From the sequence record NC_048047.1: 64,000 nt of DNA; one strand, written 5' to 3'. The position numbers were made by a program, and so were the translations under genes. The notes beneath the pieces were generated by a model. It was not told the origin of the DNA and did not search any database. It saw only the letters and a list, made by a program, of their open reading frames with translations. Below are positions 12,261 to 47,170 of this stretch, in pieces; position 1 is the first letter of the stretch, and each line of letters begins with the position of its first letter.

Positions 12261-12845
12261 ATGACGACGTTCGTGGCGTTTCCCAAGATCGCGCGTCTGA
12301 ACCGCGAGATCGTGATCACCGAAAAGCTCGACGGCACCAACGCCCAGGTCGAGATCAACGATGCTGGCGACGATATCGTCTCGGCCGGCTCGCGTAACCG
12401 CTACATCACCCCCGAGATGGACAACCACGGCTTTGCGCGCTGGGTGCGCGACAACCGTGACGAACTGATCAAGCTCGGGCCGGGCCGCCACTACGGTGAA
12501 TGGTGGGGCAACGGCATCCAGCACGGCTACGGCCTGGGCAAGGGCGACAAGCGCTTCTCCCTCTTCAACGTCAGCCGCTGGGAAGACCCCGAGACGCGCC
12601 CGGCCTGCTGCGGCGTCGTGCCGGTCCTCTACCGTGGCCTGTTTTCGGAAGACGCCATCCAGGCTGCTGTCGAACGCCTGCGCACCGAAGGTTCGGTCGC
12701 CGCGCCCGGCTGGATGCGCCCCGAAGGCGTCATCGTCTATCACACCGCTGCTGGCACCCTCTTCAAGGTCACCCTGGAGAAGGACGCCGCGCCCAAGTCC
12801 ACCTACGACGCCGAGCACGCGGCGCGCATCGCCCAGGCGGCCTAG
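12261..12845 (+). CDS. RNA ligase, Rnl2-like nucleotidyltransferase domain
   Basis: Motif I 'EKLDGTN', 'GEWWG', motif IV 'EGVIV', motif V 'FKV'. Confidence 0.8.
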   Translation: MTTFVAFPKIARLNREIVITEKLDGTNAQVEINDAGDDIVSAGSRNRYITPEMDNHGFARWVRDNRDELIKLGPGRHYGEWWGNGIQHGYGLGKGDKRFSLFNVSRWEDPETRPACCGVVPVLYRGLFSEDAIQAAVERLRTEGSVAAPGWMRPEGVIVYHTAAGTLFKVTLEKDAAPKSTYDAEHAARIAQAA

Positions 12846-25015: not shown

Positions 25016-25019
25016 TCAG

Positions 25020-25400
25020 GAGTTGTCGGCTGAAGGGTCCTTCGGGACCTGGATGACGGAATATACGGAGACTGAACTGGACCGGGGTGCGATTCCCCGC
25101 GCCTCCACCACCAAGTCTCCCGGCCGGTCCCCACCCAGGGACCTGGGCGTCGCCTTCAGCGACGGCGCCCGATCTGAACGGCGCGGGAGACTTTGTTCTG
25201 GGGGCGATCAGCATCGACAGGCAGGGTAAGTAGAAGACGCGACACGGCATGGCTGCCGGTTCCTTCGGGAGCGCTCGGCCCACTTTGACAAATGTCAACG
25301 CTGCAAACGACAACGACGTCGTGGTTTCGACCATGACCTCGGTCAAGCTGGCCGCTTAACGGCTCGGGGTTCAGGAGGCGCCTTTTCACCCAAGGTCTCC
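25020..25400 (+). ncRNA. ssrA: Circularly permuted two-piece tmRNA: acceptor piece ~25020-25110, intervening segment 25111-25199, coding piece from 25200; tag ANDNDVVVSTMTSVKLAA at 25303-25359
   Basis: 3' T-arm and CGCCTCC-A-CCA lie upstream of 5' GGGGGCG; 7-bp acceptor stem with G3.U70; tag starts ANDN and ends LAA-TAA; outer ends approximate. Confidence 0.92.
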
Positions 25401-25455
25401 AGCTTGCCCTAAGGGGCTTAGAGGACAGGCGGCGTAAGCCGCGCGATCAACACCA

Positions 25456-25632: not shown

Positions 25633-25709
25633 TGCGGGGTGGAGCAGTCCGGTAGCTCGTCTGGCTCATAACCAGAAGGTCAAGGGTTCAAATCCCTTCC
25701 CCGCTTCCA
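25633..25709 (+). tRNA. tRNA-Met(CAT), initiator-like
   Basis: Cloverleaf, encoded CCA, 1:72 mismatch (U:U), A11:U24. Confidence 0.9.
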
Positions 25710-25711
25710 TT

Positions 25712-26052
25712 TGCTGGGCTATACCAGCGAATAGACAAGGCCGCTGAACCGGCGTCTTCAGGCGTCGATGAAAGGTCTAACCTCGCGTCGCTCCCCGGTC
25801 AGTAGGGGAGTGGCAGTCAGAGCAGATAAGGCGGGCGCGCTGCGGCCGAGATAATGGCTTTGACTAGTCGGCCGGCGGGCTAGAGGGATGAGAGGCCAGA
25901 TGTCTCCTGCCGGAGGGACGCTGGCCGCCACCGATCTGTTTTCCAGGCCTCATGCTCGGCCCCGATCAACGGGGTCAGGGATTGAGGCTAGGTCCCGGCG
26001 AGACGCCTGTAGCAGGCTCACAAGCTAGGGCATGCGGCCTGGAAACCAGATC
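25712..26052 (+). ncRNA. Unassigned structured RNA(s) between tRNAs
   Basis: No ORF; many stems, a possible H-type pseudoknot (25815-25874) and a multibranch domain closed by GATCTG..TTCCAGGCC/GGCCTGGAA..CAGATC. Confidence 0.5.
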
Positions 26053-26054
26053 GG

Positions 26055-26131
26055 GGTGGTATAGCTCAGCCCGGTAGAGCGGGAGGCTCATTCCCTCCTT
26101 GTCCTAGGTTCAAATCCTAGTGCCACCTCCA
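26055..26131 (+). tRNA. tRNA with CAT anticodon (elongator Met or Ile2), atypical loop
   Basis: Cloverleaf GGTGGTA/TGCCACC, GCTC/GAGC, GGAGG-CTCATTC-CCTCC, CTAGG-TTCAAAT-CCTAG, encoded CCA. Confidence 0.85.
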
Positions 26132-26233
26132 ACCATAGCAGCGCCGTTCCGGTCACTGGGCATTGCGTCCCACACCCACGGCTCAAGGCCCGGCGCCAGG
26201 GCCTTGACGGGGTTGTCCAGACCCGGCACAAGG

Positions 26234-26282
26234 GCAAAAGGAACCCAGCCCCAGGTACGCCTCGGGCTGGGTTTTCCTTTTT
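26234..26282. terminator. Strong hairpin, possible terminator or processing stem
   Basis: AAAAGGAA-CCCAGCCC...GGGCTGGG-TTTTCCTTTT. Confidence 0.55.
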
Positions 26283-26285
26283 ATG

Positions 26286-26362
26286 GATGCCGTGGACTGA
26301 ATGGTTTAGGCGCGAGACTGCAAATCTCGATCATGCGGGTTCGAGTCCCGTCGGCATCTCCA
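26286..26362 (+). tRNA. tRNA-Cys(GCA)
   Basis: Cloverleaf GATGCCG/CGGCATC, CGAGA-CTGCAAA-TCTCG, U73 discriminator, encoded CCA. Confidence 0.92.
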
Positions 26363-37144: not shown

Positions 37145-38308
37145 ATGTCCACTTTCCCGCTGATCGAGCATATCGATCAGCTTCTCCCGGCCCTTACGGG
37201 TCGGGAGGAGTTTGTTGTGGCCAAAAAGGACGGCTACACGGTCATCGACTACCGCTACGTCCTGGCCGACAGCTTCGACGAGCCGCTGCGCCGCGAGTGC
37301 CGGGGCATCAAGTTCGACGAAGAGGGCGTGATCATCGCCCGCCCGCTGCACAAGTTCTTCAATTGGGGTGAAAAGCCCGAGACGGGGTTGCAGCAGGTCG
37401 ACTTCGGCAAGCCTCATGTCGTCATGGAGAAGATGGACGGATCGATGATCCATCCGGCCTTCGTCAAGGACAGACTGGTCTTCATGACCCGCATGGGCCG
37501 CACCGACGTGGCCCTGGAAGCCGAACGGTTGTTCCTGGAAGGCAACGACTATCTTCGCCAGGGCCTGATCGAGAGCCTCGTCAGCGGCTTCACTCCGGTG
37601 TTCGAGTACATCGGCCCGGACAACCGCATCGTCGAGGCCTACGACCAGCCTGAACTGGTCTTGCTCCAGGCGCGCGACATCGCCAACGGCGACTACCTGT
37701 CCTTGGACGCCTTGCAGGTCCTGTCCATCGAATACGGCGTGCGCGTCGCTCCGACCTATCCGGCCTTCTCCAGGCACGAGGATGTCCTGGCAGTCCACAG
37801 CCGCGCCGAGGGCGGTGAGGGCGTGGTGCTGGTGTTCGAGGACGGTCTGTTCGTCAAGATCAAGACCGACGAGTATCGGCGCCTGCATCGGATCAAGGAC
37901 GACGTCAGCCGTGAGCACGATCTGGCCCGCCTGATCCTGGACGGCCAGATCGACGACGCCCTGCCGTTGTTCGACGAGCGCACCCGCGCCCAGGTCGAAG
38001 CCTTCGCTGGAACCCTGATGTCGGCCTATGCCGGCCTGGGCGATTGCGTCCAGACCTTGGTCACGGCCGGCCAGGACGTCGACCAGAAGACCTTCGCCAC
38101 CGTCACCTTGAAGGATGCGCCCCATGGCGTGCGTTCGTGCGCCTTCAGCCTGCGCAAGGATAAGACCGTTGGCGCCGGCAAGGTGGTCCACGACTTCCTG
38201 ATCGCCCACACCAAGGACGCCAAGGCGTTCGACTCGGTGCGCGACATGCTGGGCGGCGTGCGCTTCGAGGGCAAGGTCGCCCGCATGGAGGCCGGCTGCC
38301 CATGCTGA
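37145..38308 (+). CDS. RNA ligase, T4 Rnl1-like
   Basis: 'RECRGIKF', 'HKFFN', 'EKMDGS', 'FEYIG', 'EGVV', 'VKIK'. Confidence 0.88.
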   Translation: MSTFPLIEHIDQLLPALTGREEFVVAKKDGYTVIDYRYVLADSFDEPLRRECRGIKFDEEGVIIARPLHKFFNWGEKPETGLQQVDFGKPHVVMEKMDGSMIHPAFVKDRLVFMTRMGRTDVALEAERLFLEGNDYLRQGLIESLVSGFTPVFEYIGPDNRIVEAYDQPELVLLQARDIANGDYLSLDALQVLSIEYGVRVAPTYPAFSRHEDVLAVHSRAEGGEGVVLVFEDGLFVKIKTDEYRRLHRIKDDVSREHDLARLILDGQIDDALPLFDERTRAQVEAFAGTLMSAYAGLGDCVQTLVTAGQDVDQKTFATVTLKDAPHGVRSCAFSLRKDKTVGAGKVVHDFLIAHTKDAKAFDSVRDMLGGVRFEGKVARMEAGCPC

Positions 38309-38757
38309 TGGTCATCACGGGACCTCGGGTCAAGATCACCAAGACACAGGTCCACACGGTCCTGGACGCGGTGTTCCCCGACCCGCCGGCGATCACCCTG
38401 ATTTCCGGTCGGGCGAAAGGTGCGGATCAGTTTGGTGAGCTTTGGGCGCAGGCCCGAGGCGCCGGGTTGATCCGCGTCCCGATCGACCACGCCTATGATG
38501 GCCACGACCCCTACGCCGCGCCCAAGAACCGAAACCAGCGGATGGTCGACATGAAGCCTAGGCTTTGTGTCGGCTTCCCCGGCCACAACGGCACCAACGA
38601 CATGCTGGCCCGCTGCCACAAGGCCGGCATGACCGTCTGGGAAGTCGAGTTCGACGACGCGGGCAACTACTCGGTCTGGCAATGGCCAAACCGAGACGAA
38701 CCCAAGGCCCGGCTCATTGCCGCTGGCTCTCTCCAACCGACCGAGACGACACCATGA
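38302..38757 (+). CDS. SLOG-superfamily (YspA/DUF2493-like) protein
   Basis: 'VITGPR', 'ISGRAKGAD', 'RNQRMVD', 'FPG..GT..M'. Confidence 0.7.
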   Translation: MLMVITGPRVKITKTQVHTVLDAVFPDPPAITLISGRAKGADQFGELWAQARGAGLIRVPIDHAYDGHDPYAAPKNRNQRMVDMKPRLCVGFPGHNGTNDMLARCHKAGMTVWEVEFDDAGNYSVWQWPNRDEPKARLIAAGSLQPTETTP

Positions 38758-39938
38758 CCACCGACACCCTCATCGTGGGGCCGCCGCTCTACAAGTTCGA
38801 CAGCAAGGGCAAGCTTCGCGTCTGGCGCATGGAGCAGGAAGGCTCCAAGCACCGCACCGTCGCGGGCCTGGACGGCGGCGCCCTGACCACCAGCGAGTGG
38901 ACCCAATGCGTGGGCAAGCAGAAGCGCTCCGACGAGGAGCAGGCTGCCTTCGAGATCGCTTCGGGCTACGAGTACCAGTTGAAGCGCGAATACTTCGAGA
39001 CGCCCGAGGCGGCGGCCGGCGAAGCGCGCTTCTTCAAGCCGATGCTGGCGCAGAAATGGAGCGATCTGGGCTGGGAAGGCGCCCAGAAGCGTCTGAAGAA
39101 GTCCGGCTGGACGCCGCGCTTTGACGGCGATACCGGCGTCTACGCCCAACCCAAGCTCGACGGCTTCTGCTGCATCGCCCAGAAGACCGGCCTGACCTCG
39201 CGCGAGGGCCAGCCGATTGTCGCCGTGCCGCATATCATGGAAGCCCTGGCCGGCTTCTTCGAGGAATATCCCGACGCGGTCCTGCATGGCGAACTCTACA
39301 ACCACGTCTTCAAGGACGACTTCGAGACCCTGGTCTCGATCCTGAAGAAGCAGAAGAACATCTCCGAGGAGCAGTATGCCCTCGCCCGCGAGATGGCACA
39401 GTTCCATCTCTACGACTATGCCGCCCCGCATGTGCGCGACGATCGCTACCCGGACCGCTACGAGGCCCTGGTCGAGCAGACCGCCGAGCACGTCGAGTTG
39501 GCCGACGGCATCCTGCACATCGTGCCGCTGGAGCCGATCACCAGCGCCGAACACCTGGAGCAGCACCGCTCCGAGCAAGTCGACCTGGGCTATGAGGGCC
39601 AAATGCCTAAGCTTGATCTCTGCGGCTATGAGCAGAAGCGCTCCTGGAGCGTCCTGAAGAACAAGGTCTTCGACGACGGCGAGTTCGAGGTCGTCGACAT
39701 CATCGAGGGCAAGGGCAACTACAGCGGCTACGCCAAGCGCGTCACCTGCCGCCTGCCCGACGGCCGCACCTTCGGCGCCGGTATCAAGGGCGGCCAGTCG
39801 AAGTTCAACAAGGACCTGCTGGGCGAGGCCGGCCAGGAGCAGAAGGTGGTGACCATCACCCACTTCGGCTGGACTGGCGAAGGCATCCCCCGCATGGGCG
39901 TGGCCACCAAGTGGCACGGCGCCGAACGCACCCTTTAA
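38754..39938 (+). CDS. ATP-dependent DNA ligase
   Basis: 'PMLA', 'QPKLDG', 'HGELY', 'YEGQM', 'KNK', OB-fold C-terminus 'GIPR'. Confidence 0.9.
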   Translation: MTTDTLIVGPPLYKFDSKGKLRVWRMEQEGSKHRTVAGLDGGALTTSEWTQCVGKQKRSDEEQAAFEIASGYEYQLKREYFETPEAAAGEARFFKPMLAQKWSDLGWEGAQKRLKKSGWTPRFDGDTGVYAQPKLDGFCCIAQKTGLTSREGQPIVAVPHIMEALAGFFEEYPDAVLHGELYNHVFKDDFETLVSILKKQKNISEEQYALAREMAQFHLYDYAAPHVRDDRYPDRYEALVEQTAEHVELADGILHIVPLEPITSAEHLEQHRSEQVDLGYEGQMPKLDLCGYEQKRSWSVLKNKVFDDGEFEVVDIIEGKGNYSGYAKRVTCRLPDGRTFGAGIKGGQSKFNKDLLGEAGQEQKVVTITHFGWTGEGIPRMGVATKWHGAERTL

Positions 39939-41750: not shown

Positions 41751-41833
41751 AGGCCTTTTATAAGCTATAAAGACAAAACCCTGGGATCAGTTAAAATCCC
41801 AGGGAAATCAGAGTGTTTGATCTTTATAGGCCT
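41751..41833. repeat. AT-rich nested inverted repeat
   Basis: AGGCCT..CTATAAAGA..CCCTGGGAT-cagttaaa-ATCCCAGGG..TCTTTATAG-GCCT. Confidence 0.75.
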
Positions 41834-41849: not shown

Positions 41850-42359
41850 TCACGCCTGAAGCTTCATCTGCTGGATGTGGAAGTCGTAATGCCCCGTCAA
41901 CCCCTCGGCGGCGATCTCCGCCTTCTCCTTGGCCATGCCGTTCTCGGCCTCGGCGCGGTTGATGTAGATCGAGTCGACGGTCAGGCAGTCATTGGCCCGG
42001 TCGTATTCGATCAGGGCGTAGACGATCCCGTCTTCGGCGATGTCGCCGGCAATATGGTTCTGGTAGAACTCGAAGATGCTGTCGCGATCACACGCCGCCT
42101 CGAAGGCCTCGGCGGCCTCATAGGAGCGGAAAGGGTCGTGGATCGTCATCACCCTGTCGCCATCATTGGTGATCTCGATCGGCACCCAGCACGACGTCTC
42201 CGGGCGCTGGATGCGATCATAGGAGACCCGATGCCCCAGGCGGTTGAGGATCATGTCGGCGACGACTTCGGGACCTCCATTGCCCATATAGCGGGGACTG
42301 TCGGCCGCCTCTTCGTAGAGGATTTCGATGATGGCGTCGCGGGCTTCGTCACGAGTCAC
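41850..42359 (-). CDS. Hypothetical acidic protein
   Basis: Phage-like codons. Confidence 0.6.
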   Translation of the reverse strand: MTRDEARDAIIEILYEEAADSPRYMGNGGPEVVADMILNRLGHRVSYDRIQRPETSCWVPIEITNDGDRVMTIHDPFRSYEAAEAFEAACDRDSIFEFYQNHIAGDIAEDGIVYALIEYDRANDCLTVDSIYINRAEAENGMAKEKAEIAAEGLTGHYDFHIQQMKLQA

Positions 42360-42552
42360 GGGGCACCTCGTCTATAATGCGGGCAGAGCCGAGCGCCAGA
42401 TCGCAGTGGGCGACGATCTGGCGGCGTCGCACGGTGTTGGGGGTGAGGCCGTCCGAAGCGGCGACCAGTTCCACCTCGTCTCGCGCATCTCGCAGCGCGT
42501 GTCGAAGCTGATTGATCACCGTCTCGTACTGGACGCTGGTTAGGACGGCCAA
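42349..42552 (-). CDS. Hypothetical protein
   Basis: Operonic spacing. Confidence 0.5.
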   Translation of the reverse strand: MAVLTSVQYETVINQLRHALRDARDEVELVAASDGLTPNTVRRRQIVAHCDLALGSARIIDEVPRDS

Positions 42553-42554
42553 GG

Positions 42555-43280
42555 TCAGACTTCACCGTTCAGGATCGCCACGAGGCGGTCCAGGCCGATG
42601 GCGACCTCGAAGCAGGTGAGCTTGCGCGCGCCGTTGATCTCGGGGAAGTCGGTGCGGCGAGAGGTCGACGCCACTTCCTTCCACTCGCCCTTCCAGCCGG
42701 TTTCGATGTCGATCGTCTCGGTGGCGTAGGCCGGCAGGCGGTCACTGGGGATCAGGCGGCCCTGGTCACCGACGATCAGTTCGACTTCGCGCAGGACGCT
42801 TTCGCGCACCGGCGTGGCGTAGTCGGCCTTGGTGTCCTCGGCATAGAGGCACTGGAATTCCAGTTGCCAGAACTGGTTGAAACGCAGCTTCTCAGCCGTG
42901 GCGCCGTCGCTGCTCTCGCGGCGGAACGACGGACCAGCCTGCCAGACGCACAGCGGCGCCTTGTAGCCGGACTGGCGCAGGAGGTGCTCGGCGATTTTGT
43001 AGGTGCCGGGCGTGGTCTCCGCGCGCAACGCGAAAGGCTTGTCGCCCAGGACGCCGGCCAGTTCGAAGATGTCGCTGCCGTCATAGGCGCACGAGAAGTC
43101 TTCTCGCGGCATCATCAGCGGCGTCTCGACGCGTTCGAAGCGCCAAGCCGAGTTGAGATCGAGGAGGGGTCGCGAGACGGCCTCCAGGAGACGTGCGACC
43201 ATCTGTTCGCGCAGGAGGATTTCCCGCTGCGTCCAGAAGCGCAGGCCACCACTTTGTCGGTTGTAAAGGGCGTAGCTCAT
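42555..43280 (-). CDS. Class II aminoacyl-tRNA synthetase catalytic core, GlyRS (alpha2-type)-like, without anticodon-binding domain
   Basis: 'LRAETTPG', motif 2 'WQAGPSFRRE...RFNQFWQLEFQ', 'AY..ETIDIE', 'WKEVASTSRRTDF', motif 3 'EVAIGLDR'. Confidence 0.8.
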   Translation of the reverse strand: MSYALYNRQSGGLRFWTQREILLREQMVARLLEAVSRPLLDLNSAWRFERVETPLMMPREDFSCAYDGSDIFELAGVLGDKPFALRAETTPGTYKIAEHLLRQSGYKAPLCVWQAGPSFRRESSDGATAEKLRFNQFWQLEFQCLYAEDTKADYATPVRESVLREVELIVGDQGRLIPSDRLPAYATETIDIETGWKGEWKEVASTSRRTDFPEINGARKLTCFEVAIGLDRLVAILNGEV

Positions 43281-44055: not shown

Positions 44056-44571
44056 TCACAAGGCTTTGGCGCAGGCCAGGGCCATCCGCCAACCCCGGTC
44101 CGTCGGCTCAAAGCGCGCCACCGGCGAGATCAGCTTGGGATCATTCAGGAAGTGGGGATCAAGCCACCCCTTGTTCTTCTTGGTGATCTCGTCCAGGCTG
44201 TAGGCCTGGAACACCAGCACCTTACGGCCCTCATAGTTCGTGCAGCCGGGGTAGTCGATCTCCAGGACAAGTCCCCGGCCGCTGCGCTGCTCTCGAATCA
44301 GCTTCCATTTGACCGGATCGGGATCGCCCGGTGTCAGCGACATGGGCGAAACCCCACCTCGCGTTCGCGGCGCACTACCAGGAGAGATCGAGCCGCGTAT
44401 CGGCTCGGGCTCCCGATAGCTGCTGCCGGGCGAGATCGACGACCTGACGGCGCGCGGCGCCCCGCCGATCGAGAAGGGCCGAGGACTAGCCTCGGTCTTT
44501 CCCGTCGACAGGATGCGCGGGCCGCTCGCCGCCCTGGGCGAGCGCCCGGAAGAGAACAGCCGCATGCCCAT
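44056..44571 (-). CDS. Hypothetical protein
   Basis: TGATG coupling to the NAMPT stop. Confidence 0.55.
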   Translation of the reverse strand: MGMRLFSSGRSPRAASGPRILSTGKTEASPRPFSIGGAPRAVRSSISPGSSYREPEPIRGSISPGSAPRTRGGVSPMSLTPGDPDPVKWKLIREQRSGRGLVLEIDYPGCTNYEGRKVLVFQAYSLDEITKKNKGWLDPHFLNDPKLISPVARFEPTDRGWRMALACAKAL

Positions 44572-45989
44572 CAGAACTGCGACGCCACCAGGGTGCGGAT
44601 GTCGTCCAGGTAGTGGGCGTTGAGGACGCGACCGGTATTGAAGCGCTCGACGAGCAGGTCGTCGGGACGCACTTCGCCAGCTTCGATGTTGACCGACTGG
44701 TAGCCGGTCGAGGGGCTGTAGATCAGCGCGAAGCGGCCGGCCTTGGAGGCCTTGCCAGGATCGGTGATCGGGTCCTTCATGATCGGCGTCTCGACGCCAT
44801 CGATCACGTGATTGGAGGCCTTCATCGCCCAGCGGTTCTTATCGCGGTCCATGTCGGCTGTCGCCATACCGCCGCCGGCCGCCGTCATCACGCTGTCGGG
44901 CGCGATGCCCAGCGTCTCGGCGACGTCGAACGGCTGCATGTGCGTCTTCTCGTTCATGCCGTCGCCGGTCAGCACCTTGACGCCATAGCGAATGACGTCG
45001 CGGCCCTTGGAGTTGCGATCGGTGCCGAACCCGCCGGCCAGGATGCGCAGAACCTCGGGATTGACCTCGAAGATTTCACCCGAGTCCGGCCGGCAGACCA
45101 TCGTGATGTTCTTGTTGATGATGGCCTCCTTGCGGGTGACCAGCGTCTTGGAGAACTCGAAGATGTTCCAGGTGTCGCCGACCAGCGACAGGATGGAGCC
45201 CTCGGGCACGCGCTCGATGGCGTTGTCGATGTAGTCGGCATCGTTGTCGCGGCCGAAACCGCACGAGATCGAGTGCTCGGACGCGATGACCGAGAAGCCC
45301 GACATCTCGTGGTGGTAGTAGTAATTGACATGGCGCACGGCCGGGTAGTTGTCCGAGCCCATGAAGTGGAACAGGTGCCCGATGCCGGCGAGGCACGAGT
45401 GATCGTAGCCCATGACGCCGCGCGACGAGAAGTCCAGGAACGCGAACGGGCTCATCGGAGTGTCGCTGCGGTCGACCCACGAGGCGTTGATGCGCTGGGC
45501 GATGTAGAAGTTCCGGGTCGCGATCGAGCAGGCCGTCCACAGGTCGCGCAGGATCATCGTCTCGAAGTAGCTGGTCAGCCAGTAGAGGTCCGGGTCCAGG
45601 TTCTCGACGGTGAAGAGGACGTTCTTGACCGGCACCAGGGTGCCTTCGGCGACGGCCTTGATGCGCAGCGGCAACCAGCCACCATAGACGTCGATGATCT
45701 TGCGCCAGCCGGCCTCGTTGAACGGCACACCATGCTTGGGCAGGTCGCGACGCAGTTCGTCGATATCGGCTTCGGTGACACGCTGGCCCAGCTTGGCATA
45801 GAGCAGCGGCTGGAGGCCGGCGAACATGATCGCCGGATAATGGCCGCCACGGCTCTCGATGTAGCTGTAGACGCTCGTCGTGCCCGTCCGGTAGATCAGG
45901 AAATGGCTGAACTTGTAGCTGTCGGTATCGGCGACGAGGTTATACCGCAGCGGCGGCATGTGCTCGGGCAGGCGTTCCTTGATGCGCAA
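44571..45989 (-). CDS. nadV: Nicotinamide phosphoribosyltransferase (NAMPT)
   Basis: 'DTDSYKFSH', 'YIESRGG', 'DFSSRG', 'ASEHS', 'VGDTWN', 'RPDSG', 'GDG'. Confidence 0.93.
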   Translation of the reverse strand: MRIKERLPEHMPPLRYNLVADTDSYKFSHFLIYRTGTTSVYSYIESRGGHYPAIMFAGLQPLLYAKLGQRVTEADIDELRRDLPKHGVPFNEAGWRKIIDVYGGWLPLRIKAVAEGTLVPVKNVLFTVENLDPDLYWLTSYFETMILRDLWTACSIATRNFYIAQRINASWVDRSDTPMSPFAFLDFSSRGVMGYDHSCLAGIGHLFHFMGSDNYPAVRHVNYYYHHEMSGFSVIASEHSISCGFGRDNDADYIDNAIERVPEGSILSLVGDTWNIFEFSKTLVTRKEAIINKNITMVCRPDSGEIFEVNPEVLRILAGGFGTDRNSKGRDVIRYGVKVLTGDGMNEKTHMQPFDVAETLGIAPDSVMTAAGGGMATADMDRDKNRWAMKASNHVIDGVETPIMKDPITDPGKASKAGRFALIYSPSTGYQSVNIEAGEVRPDDLLVERFNTGRVLNAHYLDDIRTLVASQF

Positions 45990-46000
45990 AGGGTGTCTCC

Positions 46001-47170
46001 TCAGAAGCTGGCGTAGCGGCCGATCATGAAGTCGGCGATGTGGGCGTGGTCCTCGAACGTGTCGGTCGGGTCGAGGTCGAACGTAGGCATCCAGAAGGCG
46101 GCCTTGGCGTCGTCCATCCCGATCAGGCGCGGCAAGCCATAGCCCTTGGGAATTTGGAAGAGGTGTGCTTCGGTGATCAGGTGCCCTCGACGCGAGCGGT
46201 TGGGATCGTCGAACCGGTGTCCTTCACCTTGGTGGAAGGACTTCAGCAGCGTGATCGCTTCGGTCAGGAAACCCGGCGCTGGCGGGGCCGGGCGGTTGGC
46301 GACGCGGGCTTCGTGGCACTCGCCCAGGTAGGCCTGGAACGCGGGCAGATCACGGTCTTCGATGAAGATGCCGGTCTCCTCGACACCTTCACGAGCCGCG
46401 CCGTCCAGCGTGCGCTCGTACGCGTTCAGGAAGCCACCGGGCAGCCCCTTCATGCCGGTGCCTTCTTCGCCACCGCGCGTGATCATGGCGATCTGGTCGC
46501 CGGCCAGGATGACCGGGTCGACCGTCTGGTGCGGACCGTCGCCCCACTTTTCGCGATAGGCGATCTCGGCCGCCAACTGCTTCATGAGGTAGGCGTAGAC
46601 AGGGCGGTCGCGGAACTTGCGCAGGAATTCGATGGTCGGACGCGGAACGGTGCTCCAGTCGAAGCCGTCGTTCCAGCCCTTGGAGTCGAAGTCGACCGCG
46701 CCGGTGAAGTAGGCTTTGCGGATCGCGGTGGCGTTCGTCCCGCTGTCGGGGACGGGCACATAATCCCAGGCGCGGAACCATGTCAGGTACTCGCTGGTGG
46801 CGTCGCGAATGTTGCCGACCAGGGAGACGCGAGGCCGTAGCGCGTTCGTGGCGCCTCGCACCGACGCGTTCACCGAATCGATCCAGCCCGCCTTGTCGTA
46901 GGGCCGGTCGTTCAGTGGCGCGAACGAGATGCGCGACATTTCACCGGGGCTCCAGCGCTCGCGCAGGCAGGCCTCCAGGACGTCGCGTCGTTCTTCGTAG
47001 GTGAAGGGGTTGCGCGTGTCGCGGGCGACGTTGGCCGACCCGAGCATCACGTGGACACGGTCGGAGACCTCCATGGCCTTGCCGATCACATCCAGATGCC
47101 CTTCTTGGGCACACTGGAAACGGCCGATGACGCCAGCGACGTCGTAAAGCGCGGTAGAGCGAGTGGTCAT
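46001..47170 (-). CDS. nadM: Bifunctional NMN adenylyltransferase / Nudix hydrolase
   Basis: 'IGRFQ...GH', 'RNPFTYEER', 'NATAIRK..F', Nudix box 'LPGGF...ERTLDGAAREGVEETG'. Confidence 0.9.
   Translation of the reverse strand: MTTRSTALYDVAGVIGRFQCAQEGHLDVIGKAMEVSDRVHVMLGSANVARDTRNPFTYEERRDVLEACLRERWSPGEMSRISFAPLNDRPYDKAGWIDSVNASVRGATNALRPRVSLVGNIRDATSEYLTWFRAWDYVPVPDSGTNATAIRKAYFTGAVDFDSKGWNDGFDWSTVPRPTIEFLRKFRDRPVYAYLMKQLAAEIAYREKWGDGPHQTVDPVILAGDQIAMITRGGEEGTGMKGLPGGFLNAYERTLDGAAREGVEETGIFIEDRDLPAFQAYLGECHEARVANRPAPPAPGFLTEAITLLKSFHQGEGHRFDDPNRSRRGHLITEAHLFQIPKGYGLPRLIGMDDAKAAFWMPTFDLDPTDTFEDHAHIADFMIGRYASF

Follow-up and report, generated by a model that had tools for sequence, protein, structure and literature searches.

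Among the catalytic cores of class II aminoacyl-tRNA synthetases (aaRS) that stand on their own, HisZ, EpmA/PoxA and AsnA stem from HisRS, LysRS and AspRS, respectively, HisZ being a HisRS paralogue that regulates ATP phosphoribosyltransferase. The amino acid:[carrier protein] ligases of Bradyrhizobium and Agrobacterium (e.g. 4h2s), which activate glycine, descend from SerRS of the methanogen type and have the gene of their carrier protein next to their own. Glycyl-tRNA synthetases (GlyRS) of the α2 type hold the amino group of glycine by three conserved glutamates (E245, E296 and E522 in the human enzyme), and alanine is kept out of the site partly by a Ser/Ala at human position 524 (S524) (PMC4938167). 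In the α2β2 type, the α subunit, GlyQ, consists of nothing but a class II core, made as a separate polypeptide; it can activate glycine by itself but depends on its obligate partner, the β subunit GlyS, for tRNA (PMC4938167), and natural GlyQ-derived mini-enzymes (GlyCA) are tiny fragments with tRNA-Gly-dependent acylation (PMC11602164). Here we describe gp230c, a gene for a stand-alone class II core most closely related to α2 GlyRS (mini-GlyRS), in a 64,000-nucleotide stretch (the window) of the genome of Caulobacter phage CcrBL9 (MH588546.1; 322,272 bp; genus Bertelyvirus), position 1 of the window being position 124001 of the record.

The gene lies at 42555..43280 on the minus strand (166555-167280 in the CcrBL9 record; AXQ69254.1) as a 241-aa open reading frame (ORF) with an ATG start and a TGA stop, and was deposited as a "hypothetical protein". 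A word search returned 487 homologues, nearly all of 226-261 aa, and a family profile search returned 104 clusters (50% identity) at E ≤ 1e-30 and 222 at E ≤ 1e-10. Compared with its counterpart in the sister phage CcrSC, gp230c carries 46 nucleotide but 6 amino-acid differences, with a ratio of non-synonymous to synonymous substitution rates (dN/dS) of 0.04. Together, these data show that gp230c is a real gene rather than a chance ORF in a genome of 64% G+C, and strong purifying selection on it is well supported by the substitution pattern. The family is large and tightly conserved, and belongs to giant phages and some soil bacteria. No match to gp230c was found in PHROGs or PADLOC, and no description of the family in the literature searched; the only NCBI name for its bacterial members is "aminoacyl--tRNA ligase-related protein".

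The AlphaFold2 model of gp230c, built from a 67-sequence alignment, has a predicted local distance difference test score (pLDDT) of 92.9 and a predicted template modelling score (pTM) of 0.90. It displays the features of the class II superfamily, namely the antiparallel-sheet fold, motif 1 (helix-strand-Pro), motif 2 (fRxE...loop...F.Q.E) and motif 3 (G.G.DR). The class II fold proposed in a preliminary description of this DNA was thus upheld by the model and by its comparison with Foldseek and VIA-align. The nine best Foldseek matches in the PDB are all α2 GlyRS, with the M. tuberculosis enzyme at 2.7e-14, and among viral models the first named match is the Orpheovirus GlyRS. GlyRS is the top match by Foldseek, VIA-align and profile search alike. 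Sequence comparison separates the nearest relatives better than structure comparison does: at E ≤ 1e-5, the family profile matched only α2 GlyRS in the PDB (1e-13, 1e-12 and 5e-6), and SerRS came next at 2.6e-5.

The same description had called the protein GlyRS-like, which holds for its nearest relative, but the likeness is distant. gp230c scored 37.5 bits against the curated NCBIfam GlyRS model PRK04173 (cut-off 312) and 20.5 bits against TIGR00389 (cut-off 243.3). Against Pfam tRNA-synt_2b (PF00587), it reached 26.9 bits, below the gathering cut-off of 29.3, which many family members clear with 33.7-48.3 bits. Pfam tRNA-synt_His (PF13393) gave 25.5 bits and the HisZ model TIGR00443 gave 24.2 bits (E 1.5e-5; cut-off 271.65), and its NCBIfam scores for HisS, HisZ and SerS were all lower than that for PRK04173. 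While about 230 residues of gp230c are aligned, the GlyRS ranges that they cover span from 320 residues in bacterial enzymes to about 460 in the human one, indicating that gp230c corresponds to the GlyRS catalytic domain with its insertions gone and nothing after motif 3.

All motifs quoted in the preliminary description (ETP, FRRE, GLDR, LRAET, RFNQFWQLE, AYATETIDIE and EVASTSRRTDF) are present in the translation, and we placed them on the minus strand by alignment and by conservation among 103 phage and bacterial homologues from both clades of the family (see below). The motif 1 region (residues 18-58; 43107..43229) comprises, by model and conservation, a helix (18-42), a strand (47-50) and the invariant P54 and P58. 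The segment RAETT (residues 86-90; 43011..43025) aligns with LRPET of α2 GlyRS in hidden Markov model (HMM) alignments to the Mycobacterium and Thermus enzymes. Motif 2 (residues 116-143; 42852..42935) aligns with that of GlyRS and consists of G-x-SFRRE, the loop SDGATAEKLRFN and F-x-Q-x-E. It is followed by two GlyRS-specific segments (residues 181-212; 42645..42740), RLPAYATETIDIE and EVASTSRRTDF, which align with KLSHYAERTVDIE and ELEGIANRTDFD of bacterial α2 GlyRS, and in which R181, P183, Y185, T189, D191, E193, E202, S205, S207, R209 and D211 are invariant or nearly so. Motif 3 (residues 225-236; 42573..42608) contains FEVAIGLDR, aligned with LELSFGVDR of N. equitans GlyRS.

In the HMM alignments, E88, E141 and E225 coincide with the glutamate triad of the GlyRS glycine pit, and A227 with the Ser/Ala site. 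These four residues, and likewise R120, E122, E202, R209 and R232, do not vary in any of the 103 homologues; R120 and E122 of motif 2 and R232 of motif 3 are predicted to lie in the ATP site. This invariance of the glycine-pit and ATP residues strongly suggests that gp230c still makes glycyl-adenylate. The motif 2 loop, which in class II enzymes is usually turned towards the tRNA acceptor end, contains an invariant D-G-A in the phage clade and is two residues shorter in the bacterial clade.

gp230c is further predicted to form a homodimer through motif 1. The predicted homodimer scored 0.79 (0.81, 0.79 and 0.77 in three runs) against 0.00 for the best control, passing a mark that is attained by 20 of 30 solved pairs and by 1 of 23 single chains. 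The runs share at least 93% of contacts, and the pLDDT of the partner is at least 87. The predicted interface is made up of the motif 1 strand and proline (residues 49-58) and an N-terminal LRFW stretch (residues 13-18), a role that may explain why residues 13-18 are strongly conserved in the phage clade; W16 is conserved in both clades. Since solved class II dimers are plentiful, this result demonstrates that gp230c resembles them and should not be taken as independent evidence of dimerization.

Compared with the described systems, gp230c shares with its best structural and sequence match, α2 GlyRS (M. tuberculosis 8u2p, T. thermophilus 1ati and human 2zt5), the glutamate triad, the Ser/Ala site, motifs 1-3, the YA..T.DIE and R-T-D-F segments and, as predicted, the motif 1 dimer. 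Unlike these enzymes, it has 241 aa instead of 440-690 aa, is only 16-23% identical to them, lacks the HGTP anticodon-binding domain and the insertion domains, scores far under the curated cut-offs and has a longer motif 2 loop of different sequence. It resembles GlyQ in being a bare core on its own polypeptide, but it belongs to another class II core lineage without a match to PF02091 and has no detectable partner, and GlyQ recognizes glycine by other residues (PMC4938167). With the amino acid:[carrier protein] ligases, it shares a truncated class II core, an alphaproteobacterial setting and the lack of a tRNA-binding domain, but its signatures are of the GlyRS type and no carrier-protein gene is present nearby or elsewhere in the phage genome. 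It is like HisZ, EpmA/PoxA and AsnA in consisting of the catalytic core only and in its predicted dimer, but unlike them in being related to GlyRS, and while HisZ has lost catalysis, the catalytic residues of gp230c are invariant. Thus, gp230c fits none of these groups fully, falling outside α2 GlyRS, GlyQ and the amino acid:[carrier protein] ligases alike.

The preliminary description regarded gp230c as a core without an anticodon-binding domain, ending just past motif 3, and this was confirmed: GLDR occupies residues 229-232 of 241, leaving 9 residues. None of the approximately 150 listed cluster representatives of the family is long enough for an anticodon domain, the few members of 306-352 aa contain no recognizable extra domain, and no fusions were found in about 100 clusters. 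We searched the complete 322-kb CcrBL9 genome with family profiles, for which positive controls among 14 named genomes gave matches to HGTP_anticodon (PF03129) in 14, GlyS beta (PF02092) in 7, GlyQ (tRNA-synt_2e, PF02091) in 7, tRNA_bind (PF01588) in 14 and the PP-binding carrier protein (PF00550) in 11. None of the five families had a match in the phage genome, in which gp230c is the sole tRNA-synt_2b-like gene. A separate anticodon-domain partner, which the preliminary description had named as evidence against its reading, was thus not found in the phage genome, which has no tRNA-binding partner recognizable by PF03129, PF02092 or PF01588. The statement that most alphaproteobacteria use the unrelated α2β2 GlyRS agrees with the GlyQ and GlyS found in Caulobacter vibrioides, the control genome of the host genus.

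In phage records, the gene occurs in every matched Bertelyvirus genome, in five jumbo phages of Brevundimonas, in Xanthomonas phage XbC2 (368 kb) and Sinorhizobium phage Phosso (469 kb), and in two uncultured phages with genomes of some 635 kb. Metagenomic members often lie on contigs of 100-600 kb, and the Atlas clusters are 86-97% viral. In a scan of species-representative genomes, 111 loci were found, almost all in alphaproteobacteria (Rhizobium, Phenylobacterium, Devosia, Caulobacter sp., Labrys and Shinella); the gene is present in 57 of 121 sampled Rhizobium genomes versus 2 of 151 sampled Caulobacteraceae genomes, and the bacterial homologues lie in ordinary chromosomal surroundings. 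Maximum-likelihood analysis separated two groups with 100% SH-aLRT support, a phage clade including gp230c and a bacterial clade, with Phosso and XbC2 basal, in a tree that is unrooted, has many long phage branches and omits five in six Rhizobium rows for redundancy. Within the phage clade, 50-60% identity and the invariant motif 2 loop are maintained across loci of 26-65% G+C.

No adjoining gene is conserved across lineages in 23 phage loci, nor across genera in 80 bacterial loci, as determined by all-against-all ORF comparison. Of the 23 phage loci, 9 have a tRNA gene at a distance of at most 1 kb, in at least seven different arrangements, and the tRNA genes near mini-GlyRS are those for Ser, His, Arg, Glu and Pro and an amber suppressor. 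Moreover, an RNA ligase is found within 4.3 kb in three lineages, including one viral contig and Sinorhizobium phage Phosso, and genes for the salvage of nicotinamide adenine dinucleotide (NAD) within 5 kb in three lineages (CcrBL9/CcrSC, the viral contig L018 and XbC2), with NadR and PnuC upstream of mini-GlyRS in XbC2. These data indicate that mini-GlyRS associates with phage translation, RNA-repair and NAD islands rather than with one specific partner.

Based on these findings, we tentatively propose, with somewhat less than even confidence, that gp230c is a minimal relative of α2 GlyRS, active as a homodimer, whose acceptor is the acceptor end of tRNA-Gly, read without the anticodon. The first step is well supported by sequence and model: each subunit is predicted to bind ATP via the arginines of motifs 2 and 3 and glycine in the three-glutamate pit, forming glycyl-adenylate. 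In a second step, the glycyl group would be handed on to tRNA-Gly at its 3' end. Recognition of this tRNA may be confined to the acceptor end (G1-C72, C2-G71, G3-C70, U73), which the invariant motif 2 loop would read, so that charging would be independent of the anticodon. CcrBL9 encodes 27 tRNAs and a transfer-messenger RNA (tmRNA), and the enzyme might provide a small, host-independent means of keeping the glycine tRNA charged while the phage runs its own tRNAs and the unrelated α2β2 enzyme of the host may be limiting or attacked. This acceptor is favoured because tRNA-gene neighbourhoods recur, because the protein is extremely conserved among phages whose hosts are unrelated, which fits a universal, conserved substrate, and because GlyRS fragments far smaller than gp230c activate glycine and show tRNA-Gly-dependent aminoacylation (PMC11602164).

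Several observations weigh against this proposal. The insertion domains and the anticodon domain of α2 GlyRS are all absent from gp230c, the family proteins are acidic (isoelectric point 5.0-6.6), and the structural lead of GlyRS over ProRS, ThrRS and HisRS is just 1-2 Z units. tRNA-Gly is never among the tRNA genes near mini-GlyRS in the 23 phage loci, and in CcrBL9 itself the two genes are about 88 kb apart. Truncated class II paralogues usually prove to have non-tRNA acceptors, as in HisZ, AsnA, EpmA and the amino acid:[carrier protein] ligases. In addition, Rhizobium presumably owns a complete α2β2 GlyRS, as most bacteria do, and its homologue is therefore unlikely to be a housekeeping synthetase.

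Some of these points suit a different acceptor. gp230c could be a glycine ligase that makes Gly-AMP and then glycylates the side chain of a protein, the thiol of a carrier protein or some small molecule, a reading that we consider rather doubtful, although the active-site evidence fits it equally well. Such transfer is known for the SerRS-like glycine:[carrier protein] ligases, for EpmA, which places lysine onto EF-P, and for AsnA, and is a common role among truncated aaRS paralogues; the accessory clade in Rhizobium, where a normal GlyRS is presumed as well, also speaks for a job other than housekeeping. However, the phage genome has no PP-binding carrier protein, no conserved neighbour that might serve as the acceptor accompanies the gene in either the 23 phage or, across genera, the 80 bacterial loci, and no fusion to another domain was seen among the family clusters. 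Furthermore, a phage-specific protein target is hard to square with so strong a conservation between phages that infect unrelated hosts, and the signatures are those of GlyRS, unlike those of the zinc-dependent SerRS-type ligases.

Returning to a tRNA acceptor, the phage tRNAs offer a broader version of our proposal. The single tRNA-Gly(GCC) of CcrBL9 (genome 78427-78501) has the bacterial acceptor G1-C72, C2-G71, G3-C70 and U73. We had considered an orthogonal pair of an α2-type enzyme and an A73 tRNA-Gly, which was rejected on account of this G1C2G3/U73 acceptor; there is thus no sign of a private enzyme-tRNA pair. The array that this gene opens (genome 78427-78599, outside the window) continues with tRNA-Thr(GGT). 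The antiphage toxSAS FaRel2 is reported to select tRNA-Gly as well as tRNA-Thr through the acceptor stem (PMC11559606). The match of the first two tRNAs of the array to the targets of FaRel2 may be a coincidence. Elsewhere in the genome (198856-199656, plus strand; L106:857-1657), a 266-aa ORF encodes a RelA/SpoT-type HD_4 hydrolase domain (E 4.9e-8); its product looks like a small alarmone hydrolase and could belong to the same translation-protection toolkit as mini-GlyRS. On the 328-kb viral contig L017, an amber-suppressor tRNA(CUA) (12439-12514) is encoded 1.7 kb downstream of mini-GlyRS, on the other strand. The acceptor of this suppressor reads G1-C72, C2-G71, G3-C70 and A73, and, unlike the suppressor beside the mini-GlyRS of Phosso (C1-G72, G2-C71, C3-G70, G73), it could in principle be charged by an anticodon-blind GlyRS. 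From this circumstantial evidence, namely the FaRel2 targets at the head of the array, the HD_4 protein and the G1C2G3/A73 suppressor, it is conceivable, if improbable, that mini-GlyRS is an anticodon-blind glycyl ligase in a translation-protection kit of giant phages that keeps tRNAs with a tRNA-Gly acceptor stem charged under attack by host immunity on these tRNAs or on the host synthetase. Such protection might extend to tRNAs that the host GlyRS cannot read, e.g. suppressor tRNAs.

A further possibility, which we regard as quite improbable, is that gp230c is half of a split synthetase that charges tRNA-Gly in the ordinary anticodon-dependent manner together with a separate tRNA-binding partner from phage or host. 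The precedent is the bacterial α subunit, likewise a bare core, and gp230c is followed by two translationally packed ORFs (41850..42552, minus strand): gp229c (67 aa), with a TTG start 2 nt past the gp230c stop, and gp228c (169 aa), which overlaps gp229c. However, the small neighbours of gp230c, including gp229c and gp228c, had no Pfam match, and these two were not found beside the mini-GlyRS gene outside the genus among the 23 phage loci compared. The phage genome also lacks matches to HGTP_anticodon, GlyS beta and tRNA_bind, and docking on the GlyS of the host is not expected, since the core is unrelated to GlyQ.

The position of gp230c among genes for nucleotide metabolism brings in a reaction independent of glycine. 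In CcrBL9, a same-strand string runs from gp235c (NadM-type) and gp234c (NAMPT) through three small ORFs to gp230c, gp229c and gp228c. The first two form an NAD-salvage pair (44571-47089, minus strand; 1.3 kb upstream of gp230c) of NAMPT and a NadM-type nicotinamide mononucleotide adenylyltransferase/ADP-ribose pyrophosphatase. gp230c might condense ATP with a second nucleotide, giving diadenosine tetraphosphate (Ap4A) or a similar signal, within a nucleotide/NAD counter-defence island. Human GlyRS (2zt5) is capable of Ap4A synthesis, and NAD-salvage genes recur near the gene in the three lineages named above, those on either side of mini-GlyRS in L018 resembling the CcrBL9 pair. Nevertheless, this is very improbable: a glycine-independent reaction would not require a complete invariant glycine pit, NAD genes are nearby in just 3 of about 20 lineages, and auxiliary genes cluster in jumbo phages anyway. 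Finally, the weak HisZ/HisRS profile matches (TIGR00443 and PF13393) and the phosphoribosyltransferase NAMPT 1.3 kb upstream could suggest that gp230c, like HisZ, has no catalytic activity and serves as a regulatory or scaffold subunit. This is highly implausible, since ATP- and amino-acid-binding residues invariant in 103 sequences are unexpected for a pseudo-enzyme, NAMPT adjoins the gene only in CcrBL9/CcrSC and L018, and the GlyRS matches exceed those to HisZ.

The answer would matter in either case. Should gp230c charge tRNA, then at only 241 residues it would rank as the smallest widely conserved aminoacyl-tRNA synthetase in nature and offer a natural test of whether reading of the acceptor stem alone, the "operational RNA code", sustains specific charging; it may also find use as a compact charging enzyme that possibly works independently of the anticodon. 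Otherwise, it would represent a new glycine-transfer reaction in hundreds of giant phages and about half of the sampled Rhizobium species. Being small, highly conserved and apparently soluble, the enzyme lends itself to an answer at the bench.

Several other features of the window surround the gene. A terminator-like hairpin with a 10-bp stem and a T run after gp228c (41779..41804, minus strand) probably ends the same-strand string from NadM and NAMPT through gp230c to gp228c, although hits of this kind in the consensus scan were no more numerous than in shuffled sequences. Beyond gp228c lie two more same-strand ORFs (gp227c and gp226c) and then an opposite-strand block, in which family matches identified an RNA ligase (gp222), a SLOG/YAcAr-family protein (gp223) and a DNA_ligase_A_M-type ligase (gp224) (37217-39938, plus strand), while gp225 had no family match. 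A permuted, two-piece tmRNA with the tag VNAANDNDVVVSTMTSVKLAA (25018-25450, plus strand) is followed by two tRNA-Met genes and a tRNA-Cys gene (25633-26362, plus strand). The tie between tmRNA and gp230c raised in the preliminary description was not borne out, as the two are 17 kb apart and no link to the gene was seen. The roles suggested in that description, namely the charging of repaired tRNAs or tRNA-like RNAs, the modification of a protein or the synthesis of Ap4A, are speculative.

Two sets of candidate neighbours were discarded in the locus comparison. Apparent "families" overlapping the gene proved to be antisense or alternative-frame ORFs of G+C-rich DNA, and the genes next to the Rhizobium homologue, encoding an Mla-type transporter, a GGDEF protein, an isochorismatase and a giant apolipoprotein-like repeat protein, were rejected as partners, reflecting within-genus synteny only. 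In Rhizobium sp. F40D2, the repeat protein (about 2,170 aa; L050:10200-16700, minus strand) is apolipoprotein A1/A4/E-like, and its gene is convergent with, and downstream of, the mini-GlyRS homologue; in Rhizobium genomes, the isochorismatase-family gene lies between the two. Among the viral models in BFVD, A0A141HRQ2, A0A2I7SAH4, A0A292GIB7 and K7QJG2 (Escherichia phage phAPEC8) likewise have the fold of bare class II cores, with 185-217 aa, but are just 13-17% identical to gp230c and probably represent separate mini-synthetase families.

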